A model generated the notes under the pieces. It saw only the letters and a list, made by a program, of their open reading frames with translations, was not told the origin of the DNA and ran no database searches. This document shows, one piece after another, positions 4,855-41,000 of a stretch of DNA of 64,000 nucleotides; positions within the stretch are counted from its first letter, which is position 1, and each line of letters starts with the position of its first letter. Position numbers and translations under genes: made by a program. This stretch comes from Macrostomum hystrix (taxonomy: Eukaryota; Animalia; Platyhelminthes): contig CATNEN010000039.1 of NCBI GenBank assembly GCA_950097015.1, forward strand, positions 4,712,001-4,776,000. The letters are read 5' to 3'.

Positions 4855-5975
4855 TAAATTCCAGGTAAGATTACCCACCCACCACCCACCACACTCCCTA
4901 GTCCTATTCACCCACCTCACTTCCAAGTCCCAATCAACCACCTCACTCCCCAGTCCCAATCAACCACCTCACTCCCCAGTCCCAAACACCCACCTCAATC
5001 CCCAATCCTAATCACCCAAATCACTCCCCAGTTCCAAATACCCACCTCACTCCCCAGTCCCAAACACCCACCTCACTCCCCAGTCCCGAATACCCACCTC
5101 ACTCCCGAGTCCCAAACACCCACCTCAATCCCCAGTCACAAGCACCCACCTCACTCCCCAGTCCCAATCAACCACCTCACTCCCCAGTCCCAAACACCCA
5201 CCTCACTCCCCAGTCACAAGCACCCACCTCACTCCCCAGTCCCGAATACCCACCTCACTCCCCAGTCCCAAACACCCACCCCACTCCCCAGTCCCGAATA
5301 CCCACCTCACTCCCCAGTCCCAAACACCCACCTCACTCCCCAGTCCCAAACACCCACCTCACTCCCCAGTCACAAATACCCACCTCAATCCCCAATCCCA
5401 AATACCCACGTCACTCCCCAGTCACAAACACCCACCTCACTCCCCAGTCACAAGCACCCACCTCACTCCCCAGTCCCGAATACCCACCTCACTCCCCAGT
5501 CCCAAACACCCACCCCACTCCCCAGTCCCGAATACCCACCTCACTCCCCAGTCCCAAACACCCACCTCACTCCCCAGTCCCAAACACCCACCTCACTCCC
5601 CAGTCACAAATACCCACCTCAATCCCCAATCCCAAATACCCACGTCACTCCCCAGTCACAAACAGCTACCACACTCCCCAGTCCTAAACACCCACCTCAC
5701 TCCCCGGTCCCAAACAGCTATCACTCTCCCCAGTCCCAAACACCCACCTCACTCCCCAGTCCTAAACACCCACCTCACTCCCCAGTCCCAAACACCCACC
5801 TCACTCCCCAGTCACAAATACCCACCTCAATCCCCAATCCCAAATACCCACGTCACTCCCCAGTCACAAACAGCTACCACACTCCCCAGTCACAAACAGC
5901 TACCACACTCCCCAGTCCTAAACACCCACCTCACTCCCCCGGTCCCAAGCAGCTATCACTCTCCCCAGTCCCAAT
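4855..5975 (+). repeat. ~26-bp C-rich minisatellite (CACCCACCTCACTCCCCAGTCCCAAA)n
   Basis: Direct inspection. A related array lies in reverse orientation at ~7470-8030. Confidence 0.9.
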
Positions 5976-6831
5976 TGCTCATAACACGCAACCTCTTTGG
6001 TCTAAGCGAGTCCATGCAAACTTTAATTGTCTGTCCCTGCTCTTCAGTTATTCCTGTACTTTTAACATTCTTCTTTTGCGGTTCGAATATTTTTGCGGCA
6101 TTGATCAGTAAAAGATTCAGAAATTCCTGCCTGAAATTTAGTCCCAGCAAAGTGCGTGACTCTAAGCTGCCACTGTCTAGTGAACTTTAGAAGAAATTTA
6201 GCACCTCGACTCCAAAGTCGGGGTCAGTCTGATTCTTCTCTCCAAGCATATTCAGCGAGAATGTATTTTGAAGTGTTTCACACAATCACTGGTCAACTGG
6301 TTCGCACAATGCCCCCCAAAGATAGCATTTTTAACTCCCGTAATTTTTCATTCCGCTTGACGCAAAAGGCAGCGGCCTGAGCATTTGTTGAAAATCGTTA
6401 ATCGAAATCGTTCTTAGTCCAAGAGAAGATGTTCTTATCAGCGTCAGAGACAGCCCGGGTGATAACACCACTCTTGGAGGGTCCCGAGAGTGGCCCCAGC
6501 CGTCCGAATGCCGTCAGAGTCACGCGCCGGGCCTGTGAACTGATCGAAGCCGATAAAGTGGAAAGGGATTGACCAGGCCACAGGACTGGACACGACTGTA
6601 AAAGGCCGACAAACGAGGTGTGAACTGTTGCTGAAAGGAGCGCCTGCTTTGATAAGCCACTTTAAAGGACCGCTAATTGTGTCCAGTGACCAGGTAATTA
6701 CCTTGTCGGCTAGAATTGACTCAAAAGTGGACAAGGTCAATCGGTCAGTTATTTAGGTTTCGGTTTCTCTTATTTAACTACAGTCGTTGGTAGGTCAGCA
6801 AAAGAACATTTGCAAACTCAACTCCGCAGAA

Positions 6832-14440: not shown

Positions 14441-14834
14441 CACGTAAATTTCGCGTCTTCTGGCACCTGTGTGTGTAGCATGGCAAACAAACCATCTGTC
14501 TTCAGATAATGGACTTTCTGGATCAGACCGCGGCCTCCTGTGGTTCTTACTGTTCCGTGGAGAAATTTGGCACGAGCTACGAGGGTCGCGATTTGAAATT
14601 AATCAAGGTGAGACACAAGTAATTTGAGGACGAATCAATATTTTATTATTTATTGACCATCGAAATTGACGTCACAGATTGGCGACAATCAACCGGGAAA
14701 GCGAATCATCTGGATAGACGCTGGCATTCACGCCAGGGAGTGGATTGCGCCAGCCACCGCTTTGTACTTCATCGACAAGGTAGGCACTGATTTAAACAGG
14801 GCAGCACCATTTGCTGCTTGGTATTTGTGTGTTA

Positions 14835-14985
14835 CTGTCTAGATCTATCAGTGTCTCACTGTGTAGATCTATCAGTGTCTCACTGTGTAGATCTATCAGT
14901 GTCTCACTGCGTAGATCTATCAGTGTCTCACTGTGTAGATCTATCAGTGTCTCACTGCGTAGATCTATCAGTGTCTCACTGTCTA
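14835..14985. repeat. 24-bp minisatellite (GTAGATCTATCAGTGTCTCACTGT)n
   Basis: Direct inspection. Confidence 0.9.
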
Positions 14986-15171
14986 GTCGTAGAATAATCA
15001 GTATCTCACGTTTTTACAAAAGAACTTATTCCATGCCCGCAGATCGTCCAGGGCCACAAGGCCTCTGACAGCAGCATTACCTCCATGCTTAACAATTTCG
15101 CCTTCTACATTGCGCCATTGCTAAATCCGGATGGCTACGTGTACACTTTCACTAAGGTCTGCGGCTCTGCA

Positions 15172-15895
15172 TGAATTCAGGGAGTGGCAGATCCTAAAGC
15201 TTCTGAATTCAGGGAGTGGCAGATCCTGAAGCTTCTGAATTCAGGGAGTGGCAGATCCTGAAGCTTCTGAATTCAGGGAGTGGCAGATCCTGAAGCTTCT
15301 GAATTCAGGGAGTGGCAGATCCTGAAGCTTCTGAATTCAGGGAGTGGCAGATCCTGAAGCTTCTGAATTCAGGGAGTGGCAGATCCTGAAGCTTCTGAAT
15401 TCAGGGAGTGGCAGATCCTGAAGCTTCTGAATTCAGGGAGTGGCAGATCCTGAAGCTTCTGAATTCAGGGAGTGGCAAATCCTGAAGCTTCTGAATTCAG
15501 GGAGTCGCAGATCCTGAAGCTTCTGAATTCAGGAAGGGAAGATCCTGAAGCTTCTGAATTCAGGGAGTCGCAGATCCTGAAGCTTCTGAATTCAGGAAGG
15601 GAAGATCCTGAAGCTAGATTGGAATACAATGGCAGATCCTGAAGCTTCATAGGGAGACAATGGCAGATCCTGAAGCTACATAGGGAGATAATGGCAGATC
15701 CTGAAGCTACATAGGGAGACAATGGCAGATCCTGAAGCTTCATAGGGAGACAATGGCAGATCCTGAAGCTACATAGGGAGACAATGGCAGATCCTGAAGC
15801 TACATAGGGAGACAATGGCAGATCCTGAAGCTACATAGGGAGACAATGGCAGATCCTGAAGCTTCATAGGGAGACAATGGCAGATCCTGAAGCCA
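15172..15895. repeat. 31-32-bp minisatellite (GAATTCAGGGAGTGGCAGATCCTGAAGCTTCT)n grading into (ATAGGGAGACAATGGCAGATCCTGAAGCTAC)n
   Basis: Direct inspection; fills carboxypeptidase intron 6. Confidence 0.92.
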
Positions 15896-17775
15896 GTTGA
15901 TCAATCATGCAGGATCGGTTCTGGCGCAAGACCCGCTCGGTGCAGTCGGGCGGTTGCTACGGAGTGGACCCCAACAGGAACTTTGCCTACGAATGGGGCG
16001 GCCAGGGCACCAGCGACAACCCCTAAAGGTACGTTTCTGACGATTTTTCTTAAATATGACGACAGAATGTGTCATAAAGTAAGATTTTAGCAAAAACGTC
16101 ATTTTTTCTGAGTCATAAAAAATGACGAACAACATTTTTACTTAAAACCACGTGAACCACGAGCCTTTCCATGCCTTCTATCATGTGCTGCAGTAAGAAA
16201 GCCATAGGATGATAAAGAAGCGGTCTATTAGAGCAAAAAAATATGACGTGGACAGAAAATATTGACCCATGACACAAGCAGAACAAAATCTGACAAAATG
16301 ACACACGCTGACGGCTTTAACATTTTATTTACGGTTAAACAAAGAAGAGTGTTTCCTGATTTTAATTTTAATGGCTTTTGCTTAATTTAGTTTTAGTAAT
16401 TACATTTTTTGTTTTATATTACTTAACTAATTGTATAAGAACATATTGCAAATATTAAGTAGTTTTTTTCAAACTACAGCACGCTTCTAGGTCGATAGAG
16501 ATTGCTAGACGTTGCTAAAACCTAGTGCTACTAACTTGGTCCTTACACATGAGAGATGGTCCTCACACATTGGCTTCGACGACCAATTTTAATTACTTTT
16601 CCTTTCCTTTCTTCTCTGTGTGGAACTTTTTCCTTTGGCCTAATAATAGCTAAAGTTGTTTAAATAATAATGTGGGCTTGAACTGCAGGGTGCATGCATC
16701 TAAAATCTATATCCTAACTTTCTATAGTCAGCATTCTGTTGCTAGATAGGCTTTTGACGGTCCTAATAGCAATTTTGTAACTTTTTTTCTAGGATAAACT
16801 TTTCTATATATGATAAGACCTTCAATAAGTACATTATAGATAATATGGGTTATTGAGATTATATAGGCTCAATGCGAATAATTTTGGTTTAAAGTTCAAT
16901 AAGTCAATAGCAATCTAGTAAAGTTTAAGTATGTAAATTATAAAGGCATTTGAAACAGAGTATGTTAGGTAGATCATTTACTAAGGACATTTTGGTTAAT
17001 AAAGTATGAAATTATATATATAAAAACTTGATAAGTTCTAATTCTAACACTTTATTAAGTTTTTTCTATTTATAGTATAGCTGGTGTTGGCTATGTTGGC
17101 AGCCAAATTTTTTTATGGTTTAATCATTGCATTGATTATATATCTTATGAGTGTTAAGCATGGTAATAGTTGGTACCCAGAAAAATAAGTTACCAAAAGC
17201 ATTCTGCTAGAACTTCACATTAAGAGGTATTTTTATAGGTATGACTTTCTTTCTAATATGCCATGTATTTGCCAAAACATTGCTTTGCAATAAGTCTATA
17301 TGTTTTTGGTATGGTTTATATGACATTGACCAACTCTAAAGCTAGTCATTCCTTTGTGGATAGTATAATCCAACTTAAGACCTCTATGCTAGTTATCTTG
17401 CTATCTAGATAGTGATAGTGTTTATATTATATAAATTGAAGACAGGTAAATAAGCAATATCTTGACTTGAATCCTAGTATTGATAGCTTGGTAGCAATTT
17501 TTTAAACATTGAATGCATATTATTTTAAAGCACTTCCTGTATTGTCAGACTTTTGACCATAAATATGCTTTGTATTGGCAATATGGATATTAGCTAACTT
17601 TAGAATTCTTAACATTAGTACAAATGAAAATATTATAAAGCTATGTCTTGGATAGTATTACCTAGTAACATAAACATTCCAGGATAATATTGCCTAATTG
17701 AATACTGAAATGGTCTATAAGAGAGCCATTGGTATCTTTCAAAAAGATTTTTGAGACAATTAGAGACCTAGAAAT

Positions 17776-18420
17776 TTGTTCTGTGAGACTGCAAAAGTGA
17801 CGGTTGCACATTTTAGAAAATATGACCTCTGTGTGTTCTATGAGACTGCAAAAGTGACGGTTGCACATTTTAGAAAATATGACCTCTGTGTGTTTTGTGA
17901 GACTGCAAAAGTGACGGTTGCACATTTTAGAAAATATGACCTCTGTGTGTTCTATGAGACTGCAAAAGTGACGGTTGCACATTTTAGAAAATATGACCTC
18001 TGTGTGTTCTATGAGACTGCAAAAGTGACAGTTGCACATTTTAGAAAATATGACCTCTGTGTGTTCTGTGAGACTGCAAAAGTGACGGTTGCACATTTTA
18101 GAAAATATGACCTCTGTGTGTTCTGTGAGACTGCAAAAGTGACGGTTGCACATTTTAGAAAATATGACCTCTGTGTGTTCTGTGAGACTGCAAAAGTGAC
18201 GGTAGTACATTTTAGAAAATATGACCTCTGTGTGTTCTATGAGACTGCAAAAGTGACGGTTGCACATTTTAGAAAATATGACCTCTGTGTGTTCTGTGAG
18301 ACTGCAAAAGTGACGGTTGCACATTTTAGAAAATATGACCTCTGTGTGTTCTGTGAGACTGCAAAAGTGACGGTTGCACATTTTAGAAAATATGACCTCT
18401 GTGTGTTCTGTGAGACTGCA
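17776..18420. repeat. 57-bp tandem array (~11 units) upstream of the YR ORF, inside the element
   Basis: Unit TGTGAGACTGCAAAAGTGACGGTTGCACATTTTAGAAAATATGACCTCTGTGTGTTC. Confidence 0.95.
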
Positions 18421-18561
18421 ACTCAACTTAAATTAGCAACTCAATGTCTCAACCCGAAAATCTGAGATTTTCACATCGTACAATTACCACATGTGTGTGA
18501 ACAGCAGTCTGAAGAAGCAACTAAATTCAGTCTAATTCGGTTTTCATTTCGCTCTTCAGCG

Positions 18562-21500
18562 ATGGAATCCAATCATTGGTCACCTAATCGGCCAGCACGC
18601 AAGCCTCCAGATGCATCCACAAGCCTGCTTCAACATCTCCTAAACGATGCACCAATTTCAATGCTAGAGATGCAAAATCTTCTATTTGATGATCCACAGT
18701 CTAAACAAATGCAAGATGGAGTCCAAGTCATCGACCCGAAGGCGCCACTGATTGCCGCGTCTGATCAGGTGCAAGATGGAGTCCAAGTCATCGACCCGAA
18801 GGCGCCACTGATTGCCGCGTCTGATCAGGTGCAAGATGGAGTCCAAGTCATCGACCCGAAGGCGCCACTGATTGCCGCGTCTGATCAGGTGCAAGATGGA
18901 GTCCAAGTCATCGACCCGAAGGCGTCGCTTACTGCCGCGTCTGATCAGGTGCAAGATGGAGTCCAAGTCATCGACCCGAAGGCGCCACTGATTGTCGCGT
19001 CTGATCAGGTGCAAGATGGAGTCCAAGTCATCGACCCGAAGGCGCCACTGATTGCCGCGTCTGATCAGGTGCAAGATGGAGTCCAAGTCATCAACCCGAA
19101 GGCGTCGCTTACTGTCGCGTCTGATCAGGTGCAAGATGGAGTCCAAGTCATCGACCTGAAGGCGTCGCTTACTGCCGCGTCTGATCAGGTGCAAGATGGA
19201 GTCCAAGTCATCGACCTGAAGGCGTCGCTTACTGCCGCGTCTGATCAGGTACAAGTGACAAGCCAAGTCAGTAAGAGGAAAGTAGGTGCAAATAGTAATT
19301 CAAAAGTCCGGCTCTACAATGAAACCGACTGTGACCTCGACGCTGATGAGGCATCACAGTCTCTATCATCGAGTATTTTCCGTCTGCAGCCTGCTTTGTT
19401 GGAAGGTAAAGGTGACCTTATCTGCTTCACAATCGATGATAATCGCTGTGTGAAAATGGACAAGTCTCTTCGATCGATCGGAAACATTGCCAGTTCCAAA
19501 AGGACTATATTGAAGCCGCGTCAAGGCGTTGACTATGTATGTCATGTCGATCCAACGCACATTATTAAGGCATCAAGAATTAGGCAACATTTTTTTAGGA
19601 AGCATGAAGCTCAGATGTTGGAATATGCTTCCTTTGATGACCTTAGAGAGGAGTTAATTTCATTCAACGAAAAGCGATTTGGTAAGCTGCATAAAGTTAA
19701 GAGGAATACCGACAAATCAACAAAGCGACAAGGCAAGGATTACAGGTGCCACTTAGACAAGTGTCATTTAATAAAAAAATCCAGATTTCTAGAACACTAC
19801 AAGCTATTTCATGCCGACGAGCTCAGATCTGAGGGCCGCAAGAGTCTCATTGAAAAAAGTAAGAGATTTACTATCCAGTTTCTTGCTGCCGAAGATGCAC
19901 AGAGTTCTACTACACAGATGCCGAGGGACTGTGAACTGCAGAAGTCGCTTGATGTCGAAAACTCAACTGAATCGACAGATGAAGATAAAGAAGAACATCT
20001 GATAGCCACATCTTCAAATGCAGTTGGTGTTTGTCCACGCTGTGAAATCCCTGTGACTAACATTTCAAGCCACCTGAAAAACTGGCACAAAATGAGCTCC
20101 GAAGAAGCAAAAGAGTGCATTGCTGGAGTGAAGGAGAAAATCGTCTCGTCATATGTTTCAAGTAGCTGGATGGCGAAATCTGCGCACGCTAGTTCATCTG
20201 CTGCAGCTGAAGAAGAATGGAGTTCTGAGCCAACTTCGGAAAGTTTCTACAATCATCTAAGGTTGTTTAGTGGTGGGAAATTTGCCGAGTCAACTGCTAA
20301 GCAGTCACGAAGGTCTCTCGATAAAATTATGTCGGTTCTTGGAGTTGTTCGACCACTAGAGATTATTAGAGAGAAGCATCGCTCTCAAATAACCGTCTTC
20401 CTAACTGGCAAATCCAATTCATTCTCCGACGGCACGAAGTCCTACGTTGAAGGATTAAAGCGCTTTGGCCAATATCTAAAGAGCTCATTCTCAAGGCTTG
20501 TTTCCAGCAACGGATTGTCAAGTGACTTAGAATCATTTCTATGCACATGTCATAGTTACGGAAAGTCCAGAGTCCGCGACAAAAAAATCGCCGAAGCAAA
20601 GCGCAGGCGCAAATTAGACAAGAGCCTTCTTTCTGTGAACGAACTAAATGTTTGCTTAAACGTCCTTGAGTTCTTTCGAAAAGCCGCCGAATCGACGTCT
20701 GTTGGATCTCAACAGCATCTTTTGTTCCTTGGCCTTCACTTCATTTTCGGCAAAGCAAACTTTCATCGCGCGGACGCTGTGTCGAACGCAAAGATGGAGC
20801 AATTTTTCGAGTGGAAGAGGGATTTGGAGAACGATCCCGATGCCATGTTTGAGGTTGTGGACCATAAAACCTCGACACAAGGTGCTATTTTCGTATCTGT
20901 TTCTGAAGTTAAGGAAAGCTTGCTGGCCTATGGTGAGTTCAGGCTGAATTGTGGCGCTGTTCTCTCAGATTTTTTCTTCGATTACGGTCGTCAAGTCGCG
21001 GGCCACTCCTTTTCGACTTTCCTGCGTAGTCTACGCCGCACTTACCCGATCTTGAACGATCTGAAGCAGTTCGACGTCAAATTTTTTCGACACTTTTTCA
21101 CCACAAAAGGTCGAGAGCACCTAAACGAAGAAAAGCAAAGTGTACTGCACAAGCGAATGAATCATACAAAGCAAGTAGCAGTGCAAAGCTACATGGCTAC
21201 TACGTCTAGTCTAGCCAAAGAAGGTGAAAAAGTTGCAAAAGAGCTTTTCGATATCGCTCTTTCAGAGCCATGCAAAGAAGTGAGCCAGGTGGCTCTAGAG
21301 TCTGAAGTCGAAGTGAGGACTCCTGAGTTTGTCAGTGAGGCACAGAATGCTGATATGAAGAAAAGTAAAACTGCAGCTAGCAAAGGTGCATCTAAGCGAG
21401 TTCACCTAAGCCGCCAGATCAGTACTAAAGTCCGCAAGAATCGAGCCAAGTCGCAGGATCCGAAGACCTTCAAAACTATTAATCATGGAAGACGTTCAAA

Positions 21501-21897
21501 GGCGCAAGCCATTTCAAGAATAGTATCATCACTAATTCATCCAAATGATCAGTCAACGCTAGTGCAGGAGCAGGAACAACCGCGAACGTTTGCAGAGGGT
21601 GACGTCGTCTTGGCAAAACTAAAAAGTTTTCCTTGGTGGCCAGCACTAGTTTGCCGCGAGCAAAAAAGTAACGCTTTTTCTCGCATTGCTTCCAGTGGCA
21701 ATCATTTTCTGCATGTTCAGTTTTTCGAGGAACCACCTACTCGAGAGTGGATAACTTACAAAAACGTGAAACCGTTTAGTCCGACTGACGCCTCTGCTGA
21801 CTGCAGTAATGATCCTGTTCTGTTGGCGGGAATGAACTCAGCACGACAAAGCCTGATGTTAAGCAAAGTGAATCGACTAAATATAGCTAAGTCGTAG
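18562..21897 (+). CDS. Tyrosine recombinase fusion protein: 20-aa repeats, two CHHC-like fingers plus one C2H2 finger, YR catalytic domain, C-terminal PWWP domain (~1111 aa from ATG 18562; ORF open from 18493)
   Basis: YR motifs NFHRADAVSN (R), VDHKTSTQG (K), KFFRHFFTT (R) and MNHTKQVAVQSY (H, Y). PWWP: GDVVLAKLKSFPWWPALV..HVQFFEEPPTREWI. C2H2 finger CPRC..HLKNWH. Uninterrupted 3.3-kb ORF. Confidence 0.82.
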   Translation: MESNHWSPNRPARKPPDASTSLLQHLLNDAPISMLEMQNLLFDDPQSKQMQDGVQVIDPKAPLIAASDQVQDGVQVIDPKAPLIAASDQVQDGVQVIDPKAPLIAASDQVQDGVQVIDPKASLTAASDQVQDGVQVIDPKAPLIVASDQVQDGVQVIDPKAPLIAASDQVQDGVQVINPKASLTVASDQVQDGVQVIDLKASLTAASDQVQDGVQVIDLKASLTAASDQVQVTSQVSKRKVGANSNSKVRLYNETDCDLDADEASQSLSSSIFRLQPALLEGKGDLICFTIDDNRCVKMDKSLRSIGNIASSKRTILKPRQGVDYVCHVDPTHIIKASRIRQHFFRKHEAQMLEYASFDDLREELISFNEKRFGKLHKVKRNTDKSTKRQGKDYRCHLDKCHLIKKSRFLEHYKLFHADELRSEGRKSLIEKSKRFTIQFLAAEDAQSSTTQMPRDCELQKSLDVENSTESTDEDKEEHLIATSSNAVGVCPRCEIPVTNISSHLKNWHKMSSEEAKECIAGVKEKIVSSYVSSSWMAKSAHASSSAAAEEEWSSEPTSESFYNHLRLFSGGKFAESTAKQSRRSLDKIMSVLGVVRPLEIIREKHRSQITVFLTGKSNSFSDGTKSYVEGLKRFGQYLKSSFSRLVSSNGLSSDLESFLCTCHSYGKSRVRDKKIAEAKRRRKLDKSLLSVNELNVCLNVLEFFRKAAESTSVGSQQHLLFLGLHFIFGKANFHRADAVSNAKMEQFFEWKRDLENDPDAMFEVVDHKTSTQGAIFVSVSEVKESLLAYGEFRLNCGAVLSDFFFDYGRQVAGHSFSTFLRSLRRTYPILNDLKQFDVKFFRHFFTTKGREHLNEEKQSVLHKRMNHTKQVAVQSYMATTSSLAKEGEKVAKELFDIALSEPCKEVSQVALESEVEVRTPEFVSEAQNADMKKSKTAASKGASKRVHLSRQISTKVRKNRAKSQDPKTFKTINHGRRSKAQAISRIVSSLIHPNDQSTLVQEQEQPRTFAEGDVVLAKLKSFPWWPALVCREQKSNAFSRIASSGNHFLHVQFFEEPPTREWITYKNVKPFSPTDASADCSNDPVLLAGMNSARQSLMLSKVNRLNIAKS
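18709..19255 (+). repeat. 60-bp coding tandem repeat (QDGVQVIDPKAPLIAASDQV)x9 in the YR protein N-terminus
   Basis: Direct inspection; frame-preserving. Confidence 0.95.
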
Positions 21898-22737
21898 TCT
21901 GTTTTTAACAATAACTCAACCTGTAGTACATTTTTTCACTTCTGGAATCGTCAAAATGGTTCCTGTACTTATTTGCACAGTAAAGGGAATATTAGAAACT
22001 CCAAACTAAAGCAAGCATAATTTCACTCATGCTGTATCCATAAAATCATGCTAATCATTTAACTACCAAATTAGAAGCTCAAAATGGAGAAAAAAGTAGT
22101 GTCGTTTTTTGTCATGTGCCATTGATCGTGATTGCAATCACCAAGATACTCGTAATTTTCTATGTTCGAAAAGTTCTGTTTTTGCGAGTTTAACACATTT
22201 TTTTAAACGTCTAAACTTTTCTAGCAAAGTTGCATAAAATATTTGATATTATACGAGCTATTAGCTAAAATCCTAAGCGCTGACTGTGTAAAGCAATAAG
22301 TCAACGTTAATGAACCTAAAATTGTCTAAGGCTTCTAAGAAAAATTCACTAGCATTCATGAGGCTTTTCACGAAGCGATTCCAGAACCAGAATTATACAA
22401 GAAAAATAGCGTTATAACTAATGACTGTTAATAACACGATAAAGCAAGAAGATTCGATTTTATACGATTTTTAGCCACTTTTATTATTATAGTCAATCTT
22501 TCTCAAAAGTTTCTGAATATCTCTCGACTATTTCTCATCTAGGTGCTGAAAAGTTATAATTGACAAAATGGTTCTGGTTCTGGAATCGGCACCGACAGTA
22601 CGAAAAGCCTACTTGACATCGTTCAAGCAATCGCTAATAATTTACTAATTTACTGCTTTCGTTCCGTTTCGTTTTTCATAATGTATCTAATGGCGTTTCG
22701 TTTCGGGCTCAAATGCTTTTCGTAATCTCGTTCACTG

Positions 22738-23735
22738 GTTCTTTAATGTTTCATTATATTTCATCATGTATTGAGCTCTAATTTTTGCGTCATCTCAATC
22801 ACAGTTCTTTAATGTTTAATTATATTTCATCATGTATTGAGCTCTAATTTTTGCGTTATCTCAATCACAGTTCTTTAATGTTTCATTATATTTCATCATG
22901 TATTGAGCTCTAATTTTTGCGTCATCTCAATCACAGTTCTTTAATGTTTCATTATATTTCATCATGTATTGAGCTCTAATTTTTGCGTCATCTCAATCAC
23001 AGTTCTTTAATGTTTCATTATATTTCATCATGTATTGAGCTCTAATTTTTGCGTCATCTCAATCACAGTTCTTTAATGTTTCATTATATTTCATCATGTA
23101 TTGAGCTCTAATTTTTGCGTCATCTCAATCACAGTTCTTTAATGTTTCATTATATTTCATCATGTATTGAGCTCTAATTTTGCGTCATCTCAATCACAGT
23201 TCTTTAATGTTTCATTATATTTCATCATGTATTGAGCTCTAATTTTGCGTCATCTCAATCACAGTTCTTTAATGTTTCATTATATTTCATCATGTATTGA
23301 GCTCTAATTTTTGCGTCATCTCAATCACAGTTCTTTAATGTTTCATTATATTTCATCATGTATTGAGCTCTAATTTTTGCGTCATCTCAATCACAGTTCT
23401 TTAATGTTTCATTATATTTCATCATGTATTGAGCTCTAATTTTTGCGTCATCTCAATCACAGTTCTTTAATGTTTCATTATATTTCATCATGTATTGAGC
23501 TCTAATTTTTGCGTTATCTCAATCACAGTTCTTTAATGTTTCATTATATTTCATCATGTATTGAGCTCTAATTTTTGCGTCATCTCAATCACAGTTCTTT
23601 AATGTTTCATTATATTTCATCATGTATTGAGCTCTAATTTTTGCGTCATCTCAATCACAGTTCTTTAATGTTTCATTATATTTCATCATGTATTGAGCTC
23701 TAATTTTTGCGTCATCTCAATCACAGTTCTTTAAT
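22738..23735. repeat. 66-bp AT-rich tandem array (~15 units) inside the YR element
   Basis: Unit GTTCTTTAATGTTTCATTATATTTCATCATGTATTGAGCTCTAATTTTTGCGTCATCTCAATCACA. Confidence 0.95.
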
Positions 23736-25074
23736 TTTAATATATCTTTAATCTTTAATATATCATTTCTTCGAAAGCAACAATTCTTTTGTGTTGCAAA
23801 TTAATTTGAGCCTCTGTCTGAGTAACTATTTTCTACATGTTTTTTTATTTATTTTATTTCAAGCTTTCTAACGGCGTTAATACATGACTAAGTGTATTCT
23901 TGCACAGAAATGACGACTGCACAATGTGTCAAATCTGACGGCTGTGCTTTTCAATGGCGTTAAATTATGACGAAATGTATTCTTGCACAGAAATGACGAC
24001 TGCACAATGTGTCAAATCTGACGGCTGTGCTTTTTATAGGGGTTGAAGCCTGACAGGCCAAGTTTTGTAAATGTATGCACAGAATTATCTTTCATTCTAT
24101 ATAGCTTTAAATATTTTTTTCTGTGAGTTACCTCTAGAATATCATTTCGTTAAAATCCGACTGTATAGAAGGTTTTTTATTCACAAAAATTTCTTACGAA
24201 TAGTCTAATTAAGTTATTAACAATGAATGGCGATGTCACGGATAAATCATAATGAGTGCAGATATGACGTGAGAGTTGCAGCTGGAATTGGACGAAACTG
24301 ATCTTTTTGACAAAATGAAAGTGCAACAGTCATTTTTGCTGTGTCATGAGCTAATTCAAAATGAATCTCATAAGGATACACACTCGTCATTTTTTAATAT
24401 TTATGTCATGTCATTTTTCGGATATTCGTCATAAACGAACCCCTGCTCGGACACGTTCAGGGGAACGGCAGCCTTCACCGAGCCTGAGACCAGGGCGGTG
24501 CGAGACAAATTGCTCAGCGTCCGGCTAAGGACCATCTCCTTCATCACAATGCACTCCTACGGCCAGTACTGGATGGCCCCCTACGGGTGAGACAAGCTTG
24601 GCATGACTATTATAGCAGCCAACGAGCAGCCTCTCACTGTGCCTCTCACTGTGCCTTCCTGTCAGTAACTATTGCACTGAGGACAAACATGTGAAGCAAA
24701 AATGTGTCAGTTTTATAGGCCTAGACAGGAAAGTAGAGGTAAAAAAATAATTACATTTTCTAATAGAAAAAGTGGAAACTCAGAGAGCAGAATGAAATTC
24801 CACGTGTTAATTAGCGGGCAAGGAAATGAGTATGCATTACAGTGCATTAACTAATAATAGGCCAGCATCGAATATACAGACGGTGCTGTATTAAACAGTA
24901 AAGTGGTAACAACATGCTAATATACGGGTATATCGGCACACAGGCATACTTCCATATTTAGCATGGGATTTAAAGATGCAGGTTCACAATGAAGATCTGG
25001 GAAAAATTACTGTTTAGAATGAGTATCTAGGAGTGGCTCGGAATCTAGGAGAGTCTATTTTAGGCTTAGAATCG

Positions 25075-38000: not shown

Positions 38001-41000
38001 CGGACCACTACCACCGGCTCGACAACACTCTATCGACTACAACTACATTCTTACAGCCTTGGATGTTTTTTCGAAATTCGCCGTTGCCATTCCGATACCT
38101 GACATCACAGCGACAACAGTTGCAATGGCCTTCTATAATGAAATTATCTGCAAATTCGGAACTCCTAAGACGCTAACATCTGACAATGGTACACAGTTCA
38201 CATCGCAATTATTTCAACAGGCCGCCAAACTACTGAATATTCAACAAATATTCACTTCGACATATAATCCAAAAGCAAACCTCGTCGAAAGATTTCACAG
38301 AAATCTACATGAAATGCTGACACACTTTGTTTACAAACAACCTGAAGATTGGATTATTTACATACAATCCGTGACAATGGCCTACAATAGCGCAGTTCAT
38401 CGTTCAACAGAGAACACACCATTCTTTCTGATGTTCTCTCGAGACTTTCAACCACCGAATCTATTAGTTCAGAAATTACTGCCATCTCAATATGTTGACA
38501 CGCCGACGACGCTACAAAAGTTCACTTCTCAATTACACCTAGCATGGCAAATTGCAAAACATAATCTCGACAACCAATCTACCGTACCTACAACAAGTAA
38601 TCATGCTTCTACCTTACAAGTAGGAGATATCGTCTACCTACACTACCCGGCACAGCATACGCACAAGCATGCTTTCAAATACAAAGGACCTTTCCGTGTA
38701 ACAGGACTGATATCCGCGACAACAGCACGCCTTGCAAATATCCAGGATCCACATCAACCTCAGTTCTACGTTCACATTCAACGTTTAAAACGCATCACTA
38801 ACGACACTACATTCCTTCCAACGTTACAGAATCCAGACCACACAAAAACAACAAACAAGCACATTGCAACAGCACATGCCGAGACACAAACCACAAACAC
38901 ACCACCAAATACTCATACGTATAACCTACGCCCGCGTTAAATTACTCGTTTATTGTTACCCGTGTAGTGACCGGGATTAAGAATAGCACTACAGCTTCTC
39001 AAGCTTGTCGTAAAAGGCGACTAAAACCTCTGTTCTCTGCAAACGCCCACACAATTTTCGCGAACACTACCATGGACTGTCCTGTCTGTCTTGAAGAATT
39101 CTCATGTAAACTACCATGTATATGTGTCAATAAACACCATGTTTGCGGTTCTTGCTTAAGCCTCGCACACTACAAAAAACCATTAAAAAACTGTCCTTTG
39201 TGCCGTGGAAATCTCCGCCAATGTATGATATGTAACTCATGGCGAACTGTACAATACTGTCAATACGTGATGTTATCTTATTATTGTTAAGCTAAGTCAT
39301 TTTCTTTTCCTCTCAATAATAAATTCGGGACGAATTTTTCGTAAAAAAGGGAGATATTGTAGAGAGTTGTAAAATACGTTTTTACTTAACGCGCTACTTA
39401 AAGTAATGTCACAAGGAAACCTTAGCTATAATGTTTAATCTATTTTTAGGAATGAGTCATGCGCTATTTTTAGAAACAAGTCATGTGACATGAAACCGGA
39501 GAACCGGTTCTTGACAGCTGTGTTTGCTTGAATTCCAAATATGGTAAAGCAAACAATTATGACTCATCGGGTTCTGCGTCTGTGTTTGCACTGTATTCCA
39601 AATATGGTAAAAACTCACAATCATGACTCACTAAACAAATATGTGTGACCTAAGTAAACACCCGGTAGTAGAACCGGTTTTTCCCCAAGGTTTTGCTATA
39701 AATACAAGCGAAAATCCGAGCTAAAAATTCAGACTCGGAGCGGTCCACCGGACTTCAAAACACCTTACGAAGAAGAGGACTCATCTCTGAGGGAAAGACA
39801 AGTGGTAAGCGCTTTATTAGACAGAGTTATTTATTGCTAGCAATAGTTGTTGAATTGAACTAAGTTTACGAGAGCCACATATCGTCGATACATTTGAGAA
39901 AGGCCTCCTTGTTTCCTAGGATACATTCCTAGAGGATTATTGATTGATTTGAATTGAGTTATCCGTTATCTTTCGGAGGTAACGAAGAAGACGCCCTTCA
40001 GGAGGACCTACTAGAGATATACAAGAGAGATTTCAATTGTTCACTAGGGCGCACGTTTCTATTGTGAATTCCGAGCTCGAGGAAACCGAAAAGTAATCTG
40101 ATTCGCTCTCGTCATTTATTGGCCAACAGACAAACTCAAGCAGCTACCAGGAAGACAAAGAAGACAAGACTACAAAGACTCAAGAAGCAACAGAACCAAT
40201 ACTTCACGGTCGACCAGCACAAGAAGAAGAACCGCCGGCTATCGAAAACCAAAGACTACAAACAACTCACTATCAAGGAAGAAGAAGAAACTGCAGTAAG
40301 TGTCACGTGACTGTTATAAATTCCTAGGCAATTGTTCCCCATTGTCTAGAAGTGGGAGTTTCGTGTGTCTGATCAACACGCAAAACTCTTCACGAATAGA
40401 GGAAGTGAGGTGGAATAGAGTGAGGGAAGAAAGAGACGCAATAGAAGAAGATATAAGAAATATGGTAGGAAAGAGAGAATAAAGAAGGAGGAAAGAGTGA
40501 GGGAGTGGGAGAAGAGAGGGAGTAGGGGAAGAGTGATGACAGAAAAAGAGAGAGGAGATATAGGAAAGGGGAATAGGGGAAAAGAAGAGGGACTAGGGGA
40601 AGAGAGAGGGGATAGGGGAAGGGAGGGGATAGGGGAAGAGAGAGGGGATATGGGAAGAGAAGGGATAGGGGAAGAGAGGGGATAGGGGAAGAGAGGGAAT
40701 TGGGGAAGAGAGGGAATTGGGGAAGAGAGGGAATTGGGGAAGAGAGGGGGAATAGGGGAAGAGAGAGGGAATAGGGGAAGAGAGGGGATTGGGGAAGAGA
40801 GGGAATAGGGGAAGAGAGGGAATAGGGGAAGAGAGAGGGAATAGAGGAAGAGAGAGGGGATAAGGGAAGAGAGGGAATAGGGGAAGAGAGGGAATTGGGG
40901 AAGAGAAGAGGGAATGGGGAGGAGAGACGAAATAAAGTTGGAGGGAAGAGGGAGGAGAGAGGGAATAGGGGAGAGCGCACAGCCCAACCCCACCCTCACC

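Follow-up and report, generated by a model that had tools for sequence, protein, structure and literature searches.

The window analyzed in this work, a stretch of 64,000 nucleotides on the forward strand of contig CATNEN010000039.1 of the flatworm Macrostomum hystrix (assembly GCA_950097015.1, positions 4,712,001 to 4,776,000), contains an exon of an M14 carboxypeptidase gene that is split by an element of 8,420 bp, whose open reading frame (ORF) joins a putative tyrosine recombinase to a C-terminal PWWP domain. The insert lies at window positions 16024-24443, one flanking CCCC being counted. When the two exon flanks were searched separately against Pfam, the left half (15901..16023, + strand, ending in DPNRNFAYEWGGQGTSDNP) matched Peptidase_M14 at profile positions 109-146 (E 4.6e-11) and the right half (24444..24584, + strand, CSDTFRGTAAF…MHSYGQYWMAPYG, followed by a GT donor) at profile positions 147-192 (E 4.4e-9). 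Since these matches adjoin, the exon was split without loss. The zinc-binding HAREW motif is still present in the exon upstream. The sequence at 16020-16029 reads CCCC TAAA GG, with CCCC again at 24440-24443, and the element brings an in-frame TAA directly after the AAC CCC of the exon, so that the carboxypeptidase of this allele should be truncated and inactive. The exon is knocked out by this copy. A preliminary description of the locus had proposed an 8,420-bp element within this exon, with a single long ORF, and both points hold. Its limits of 16025-24444 gave the right length, the ends being shifted here to 16024-24443, and what it had read as an "NP|NP" repeat is actually the CCCC direct repeat plus one chance A.

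Two further observations concern the carboxypeptidase gene. A paralogue on contig 34 (L020, G000:C34:1620095-1620223) has an uninterrupted M14 carboxypeptidase exon, 73% identical, which shows AACAACCCGAGC at the place of AACCCCTGC in the window gene and hence is devoid of the CCCC core. The intron that precedes the split exon contains, at window 14811-15815, tandem repeats (SISVSLCR… units) that produce extended repetitive open frames on either strand. Introner-like splicing-out of the insert, through the AG|GTACGT of its left end, was considered and rejected, as the right end has no AG and the TAA stands in frame past the junction.

A search of the genome (220 Mb, 42 contigs) recovered five full young copies of the element, namely that of the window and those at C39:0.28 Mb, C33:2.66 Mb, C10:2.40 Mb and C25:8.11 Mb, to which are added an older copy at C38:12.75 Mb (78-92% identity) and two fragments of element ends. 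The limits of the whole element (16024..24443, + strand, 8,420 bp including one CCCC) are given by the five young copies, which have exactly the same ends at unrelated loci. Over 3.4 kb of non-repeat sequence they differ among themselves by 0-1 substitutions, and the whole variation in their lengths (7,845-8,508 bp) comes from three internal tandem arrays. Three of the young copies (window, C10 and C39b) keep the long frame open, while that of the C25 copy is broken by four indels and zero substitutions; these indels could be assembly errors. It might be argued that the recombinase-PWWP protein belongs to a domesticated host gene family and that the 8.4-kb unit is a segmental duplicate, a reading that we regard as extremely improbable. 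It is already contradicted by the junction data, with base-exact ends in unrelated flanks and a constant CCCC repeat and att-like termini, and also by the position of one copy within a conserved exon and of another within a retroelement gag, and by the near identity of the copies. The older copy (G000:C38:12753969-12764404, L013/L018) carries about 1.4 kb extra between its recombinase and PWWP parts, and its 3' part is 78% identical vs 91% for the 5' part, which hints at a mosaic of subfamilies.

All copies are organized as flank-CCCC-TAWW-GGTACGTTTCTGACGA ... TCGTCATAAACGAA-CCCC-flank, and beyond the CCCC nothing is common to the flanks. In the window, with all features on the + strand, the left CCCC (16020..16023), a target-derived direct repeat and the crossover core, is shared by the left junctions of 6/6 copies of the family and 2/2 copies of a sister family. 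It is followed by the spacer remainder T-A-W-W (16024..16027), of which the junction alignment shows 16026-16027 to be variable, and by the left terminal arm GGTACGTTTCTGACGA (16028..16043), the inverted partner of the right arm with a 14/16 match. On the other side, sequence and junction alignment place the right terminal arm TCGTCATAAACGAACC at 24426..24441 and the right CCCC core at 24440..24443. CCCC is found at both ends in eight copies of the two families; long terminal repeats are absent, and there are only the 16-bp inverted arms. If joined, the ends would read TCGTCATAAACGAACC / CCTAWW / GGTACGTTTCTGACGA, that is, 16-bp inverted arms (14/16) around a 6-bp spacer. The core sites of tyrosine recombinases are built of two inverted repeats of 11-13 bp, 6-8 bp apart (PMC3212892), and the joined ends are, as predicted from their sequence, a lox/att-like 16-6-16 site with this layout. 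In the sister family the arms CGTCATTCACCTACC and GGTAGGCGAATGACG are of other sequence but retain a symmetry of 14/15, together with the CCC(C) repeat and the CCTATA spacer; this conservation of symmetry and spacer despite the changed arm sequence argues that the site is functional. The sister family (L049, with L054/L055 at C38:33.66 Mb and L052/L053 at C25:4.28 Mb) comprises two copies of about 10 kb that are 98% identical and end as CCCC-TATA-GGTAGGCGAATGACG … CGTCATTCACCTACCC. For L048, L050 and L051, sister lineages present as single copies, a search with the terminal signature did not locate the ends.

The spacer is not fixed even among near-identical copies. At the two W positions, six otherwise 99.9-100% identical copies (window, L009, L010, L016, L017 and L027) vary (AA, AT, TT, TA, AT, TA), a pattern that strand exchange or repair may have left behind. 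A variable spacer of this kind recalls the coupling sequences of Tn916-type elements, here restricted to A/T. Further inside, the 400 bp at either end of the element contain ATGAC[GA] hexamers at about 15 times the expected frequency, with mostly opposite orientations, and the left subterminal region (16024..16423, + strand) has seven of them vs 0.46 expected in a shuffle test. A TGACG core also occurs in every unit of two tandem arrays detected by Tandem Repeats Finder (TRF) on the + strand, one with 11 copies of a 57-bp unit upstream of the ORF (17777..18421), whose copy number varies among copies of the element, and one with 15 copies of a 66-bp unit downstream of it (22738..23735), where each unit reads CGTCA and is inverted relative to the 5' array. 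Both the hexamers and the TGACG arrays are candidate accessory binding sites.

The sole long ORF, with no second one in the element, occupies 18493-21897 and encodes 1,111 amino acids (aa) from its first ATG to the stop (18562..21897, + strand), being open in the window, C10 and C39b copies. Its N-terminal part contains a coding 60-bp tandem repeat in nine copies (18710..19255, TRF), which corresponds to a 20-aa repeat; N-terminal repeats are also present in the homologue of Macrostomum lignano. Then follow two CHHC-type fingers and one C2H2-type finger (19534..20090), presumed to bind nucleic acids, whose Cys and His residues are invariant in the alignment, and in relatives of the protein zf-U11-48K scored above its cut-off. 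The next region (20215..21282) comprises the N-terminal helical domain and the catalytic domain of a tyrosine recombinase, recognized by fold and invariant residues, and the protein ends with the PWWP domain (21598..21894), recognized by Pfam PF00855, an MSH6 match, its fold and its aromatic cage; all these segments are on the + strand. In the Pfam search PWWP was the only domain found in the element, with neither reverse transcriptase nor any other transposition enzyme. No clear poly(A) signal was found after the stop codon.

The catalytic residues R..K..R..H..Y named in the preliminary description correspond, counting from the ATG, to R736 (at 20767), K769 (20866), R843 (21088), H868 (21163) and Y877 (21190). 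These five residues do not vary among four lineages of 30-40% identity, and the region that holds them folds as a tyrosine recombinase. The family alignment shows GNAxRPD, HKT, YRKYxET, RLxH and QSY as conserved motifs. An AlphaFold (AF2) model built from this alignment reached a predicted local distance difference test (pLDDT) of 87, and the top Foldseek matches of the model were XerA, an archaeal Xer, IntI, Cre, XerD and XerH; the first 41 structural matches belong almost all to the recombinase/topoisomerase IB superfamily, including a few recombinase-like phage regulators. The catalytic half aligned with poxvirus and bacterial topoisomerase IB and with XerH over about 170-180 residues (VIA Z 10-11, root-mean-square deviation (rmsd) 3.3-3.8 Å), and both domains together aligned with XerA, IntI, XerH and Cre over 255-287 residues. 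K769 lies between two modelled strands, like the hairpin lysine of recombinases, and the spacing R-25-H-9-Y is similar to that of Cre (R292-23-W315-9-Y324). A language-model atlas placed the protein among unnamed animal clusters and Phage_integrase clusters. With HMMER, 1.8 billion representative proteins yielded 10 relatives of region 20215-21282, with two families belonging to M. lignano, a species that also supplies the best outside protein match, a hypothetical protein; a word-index protein search, which is a limited tool, returned a single homologue of the recombinase part.

Cryptons are defined by an ORF with a recombinase only, terminal direct repeats of 4-6 bp and a proposed circular intermediate (PMC3212892), and by structure the element falls within this definition. 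We consider it likely to be a Crypton-type DNA transposon that is young and probably still active, in line with the tyrosine-recombinase mobility claimed in the preliminary description. The circle route and the att-like site are what we infer, excision as a circle being suggested by the anatomy of the element and by how tyrosine recombinases work. The element would be excised as a circle whose joined ends form the 16-6-16 site, and the recombinase, probably aided by the fingers bound to the ATGAC[GA] arrays near both ends, would recombine this site with any chromosomal CCCC, an integration that would leave CCCC at both sides. A DDE transposase encoded elsewhere could instead move the element through its 16-bp inverted arms, always with a CCCC duplication, the recombinase being cargo or a resolvase. 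The imperfect inverted repeats of the ends and the enriched inverted subterminal hexamers, seen in many DDE transposons, would agree with this, but the element has no DDE gene, the design is kept in the sister family with other arm sequences, and TAWW stands only between CCCC and the left arm, so that the ends are asymmetric, as suits a recombinase spacer and not a duplication. Movement by a DDE transposase is, therefore, very unlikely.

Several observations count against a Crypton that excises and integrates through its own recombinase. No match to Phage_integrase (PF00589) or DUF3504 was obtained in Pfam up to E 1, and the family profile, compared with the sequences in the PDB, found no solved recombinase but only zinc-finger noise. 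The recombinase call rests, therefore, on fold and motifs: of the two checks proposed for it in the preliminary description, the structure search agreed (XerA, IntI, Cre and XerD in Foldseek) and the profile searches did not. The enzyme lacks the His found in the usual HxxR motif, and the active site therefore resembles the R-K-R-H-Y pentad of topoisomerase IB. We nevertheless favour a recombinase over a topoisomerase, on the grounds of the modelled two-domain match and of the biology of the element. At the junctions, the spacer is of the element type in 8/8 cases, though a 6-bp overlap that shares only CC with the target predicts about half of the target type. Among the public-run contigs, to which this part of the analysis was confined, neither the junction of a circle nor a footprint of excision nor an empty allele was observed, and the evidence from public runs for expression of the ORF consists of contigs of uncertain type. 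The ORF was present, as contigs, in ten public sequencing runs. In two runs of another study (X4 and X6) coding and non-coding parts are both covered, at low depth and with one or two differences, so that these runs are probably DNA from other samples. Run X9, which bears another organism's label and is supposed to be RNA, contains a 374-nt contig identical to 21571-21944, that is, the PWWP end plus 47 nt, which could reflect 3'-biased expression, a mislabelled sample or contamination.

The second component of the protein, the C-terminal PWWP domain, passes Pfam PF00855 with 54.1 bits against a cut-off of 25.6 (E 2.3e-14), and with 44-64 bits in the sister lineages. Its best match among solved sequences is MSH6 (E 6.5e-15 over 102 residues), followed by NSD3, NSD2 and DNMT3B; the MSH6 match takes in the C-terminal helices and the HVQFF..PTR.W block, with a fold rmsd of 2.1 Å. 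The model (pLDDT 84) shows a beta-barrel with C-terminal helices and gives template modelling (TM) scores of 0.75-0.81 against PWWP1 of NSD3 and NSD2 and the PWWP of MSH6, so both the MSH6-type domain proposed in the preliminary description and the fold check suggested there were borne out. The PWWP domains of MSH6, NSD2 and NSD3 are readers of H3K36 methylation (H3K36me). In the element, the cage residues are F1023, W1026 and F1054, and these positions are aromatic (F/Y, W, F) in 6/6 aligned lineages that are 34-67% identical; in HDGF2 and BRPF1 their counterpart is the cage Y-x-x-W … F (PMC3119473). A word-index protein search with the PWWP tail, in two length ranges, returned no match, a result of little weight given the limited tool. 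The probable host MSH6 was located at G000:C25:3438583-3460884 on the minus strand, where a PWWP exon lies about 10-20 kb upstream of MutS_V exons. That the element captured its PWWP recently from this host gene was considered and rejected, because the identity between the host exon and the domain of the element is only about 38%.

The fusion is not peculiar to the window. A genome search with PWWP and recombinase found about 30 recombinase loci, among which at least four further lineages have repeats, fingers, recombinase and C-terminal PWWP, so that at least five lineages in this genome carry the fusion. The sister lineages with the same layout include one of 1,110 aa (C3:6.25 Mb), one of about 1,400 aa (C38:33.66 Mb and C25:4.28 Mb), one of 1,531 aa (C2:3.25 Mb) and one that is broken (C38:33.81 Mb). 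The PWWP is absent from more distant lineages (24-30% identical) and from outside relatives, and because of this distribution it is, as far as the sequences indicate, a domain gained once within this clade and then kept; its retention in the clade speaks for a benefit to the element. In M. lignano, the homologue P0001 ends just short of the expected start of the PWWP. Two distant lineages, L056 (C24:5.80 Mb) and L057 (C3:12.47 Mb), are 24-29% identical and have long ORFs without PWWP. These PWWP-less lineages provide a natural comparison group for target choice.

What the PWWP does for the element can be approached through eight insertion sites, those of the five young copies, the older copy and the two copies of the sister family. 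Recognisable host exons received two of the five young copies, one being the M14 carboxypeptidase exon and the other the final codons of a gene for a Cys-loop receptor (Neur_chan_memb, just past the transmembrane segment TM4). A third copy lies in the gag part of the ORF of a long terminal repeat (LTR) retroelement, which brings to 3/5 the young copies within ORFs, and the remaining two lie in unassignable DNA. The only sequence common to all eight sites is CCCC. It is possible, and we advance it tentatively, that the PWWP tethers the recombinase to H3K36-methylated nucleosomes and thereby biases the choice of CCCC toward transcribed regions; in the mechanism outlined above, it would skew the choice among roughly one million CCCC sites. 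That the recombinase of the element itself reads H3K36 methylation through the PWWP and prefers transcribed gene bodies, combining a loose 4-bp requirement with a choice made on chromatin, we put forward with somewhat more reserve. If true, this would be the logic of LEDGF and HIV within one protein.

The same domain could, however, be a general anchor for DNA or nucleosomes rather than a chooser of targets, holding the circle or the recombinase on chromatin or aiding its work on nucleosomal DNA, and exon landings would then result from the CCCC core in GC-rich coding DNA plus chance. We regard such an anchor as possible, if somewhat doubtful. It is favoured by several results that, at the same time, tell against steering. 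The PWWP of MSH6 reportedly attaches to double-stranded DNA in a non-specific manner (PMC3119473). Both PWWP-bearing copies of the sister family (2/2) were inserted in tandem-repeat DNA, and no Pfam match was obtained for the sequences around the C10 and C33 copies, which leaves two young copies without a recognisable gene. Around the exon sites the GC content is high (0.56-0.64 within 100 bp), and because of this the CCCC core itself may favour GC-rich coding DNA. The sample is also tiny, and an open frame across the empty site, tried as a measure of exon landing, was dropped as uninformative because 73% of the CCCC sites of the window already lie in open frames of at least 89 aa. The anchor is opposed by the three cage aromatics kept in every lineage, which plain DNA binding should not need, and by the raw count of 2/5 young copies within conserved host coding exons. 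The preliminary description had taken the landing in an exon as support for steering by H3K36me3, and that argument is withdrawn here, given two of five young copies in host exons, sister copies in tandem repeats and CCCC at all sites. Steering by the PWWP thus stands as a conditional proposal, and we treat a preference of the element for exons or gene bodies as a hypothesis rather than a result.

Elsewhere in the window, the segments 5001-6000 and 40001-41000 show extreme GC skew (-0.80 and +0.54, respectively) and are probably simple or satellite repeats.

A PWWP reader on a DNA transposon with a tyrosine recombinase is a combination absent from the searched literature. No paper there contained both Crypton and PWWP, in agreement with the preliminary description, which had not recognised the architecture as a described Crypton, and the few papers that combine tyrosine recombinase, PWWP and transposons seem unrelated by their titles and abstracts. 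The window itself contributed the exon knock-out, the analysis of eight target sites, the att-like design in two families, the variable spacer and a caution on exon targeting. The system is tractable, as there are near-identical copies, an ORF open in three of them, a recombination site legible from the ends and PWWP-less relatives in the same genome. If the PWWP steers integration, the reading of active-gene marks would have evolved in a second, unrelated integration machinery, and a eukaryotic integrase both compact and equipped with its own chromatin address would be at hand; otherwise, the element remains a new, well-defined lineage of animal Cryptons.

Comparison with known systems helps to place the element. 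With Cryptons (Goodwin 2003; Kojima and Jurka 2011, PMC3212892) it shares a recombinase as sole enzyme, terminal direct repeats of 4-6 bp, regarded as the substrate of crossover, and the absence of reverse transcriptase and long terminal repeats, but it differs in having no sequence match to DUF3504 (CryptonA-derived) or Phage_integrase, and in its CHHC fingers, PWWP and clear 16-6-16 site; described animal Cryptons are said to possess neither a C-terminal domain nor terminal repeats (PMC3212892). Unlike DIRS/Ngaro retroelements, in which reverse transcriptase and RNase H accompany the recombinase, it has no reverse transcriptase domain and no second ORF, and unlike the giant, cargo-carrying Starship elements of fungi (Captain/DUF3435), it gives no Pfam match to DUF3435, measures 8.4 kb, carries no cargo and resides in an animal genome. 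Cre/loxP, the core sites of lambda Int and Tn916-type elements resemble it in the inverted arms around a 6-8 bp overlap, the two-domain fold, the loose targets and the variable spacer, whereas here the host is a eukaryote, only the 4-bp CCCC is shared with targets and spacer variation is limited to two A/T positions. The N-terminal PWWP of MSH6 is alike as best sequence match and in fold, but in the element the domain forms the C-terminal end of a recombinase. Chromatin readers captured by mobile elements are on record, mainly chromodomains and PHD fingers on retrotransposon integrases, and the chromodomain of MAGGY targets H3K9me regions, according to a preprint (10.1101/2021.11.30.470311). 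Chromoviruses (Ty3/gypsy, MAGGY, Tf1) are similar in that an integration enzyme carries a methyl-lysine reader of the Royal family, through which it can be tethered to marked chromatin, but they are retrotransposons with DDE integrases and a chromodomain, whereas the element combines a tyrosine recombinase with a PWWP of the H3K36me type. In HIV-1, finally, the H3K36me3-bound PWWP of LEDGF/p75 steers integration into transcribed gene bodies; there the reader is a host cofactor recruited by the integrase, whereas in the element of M. hystrix the PWWP is fused to the enzyme itself and its steering role is hypothetical.

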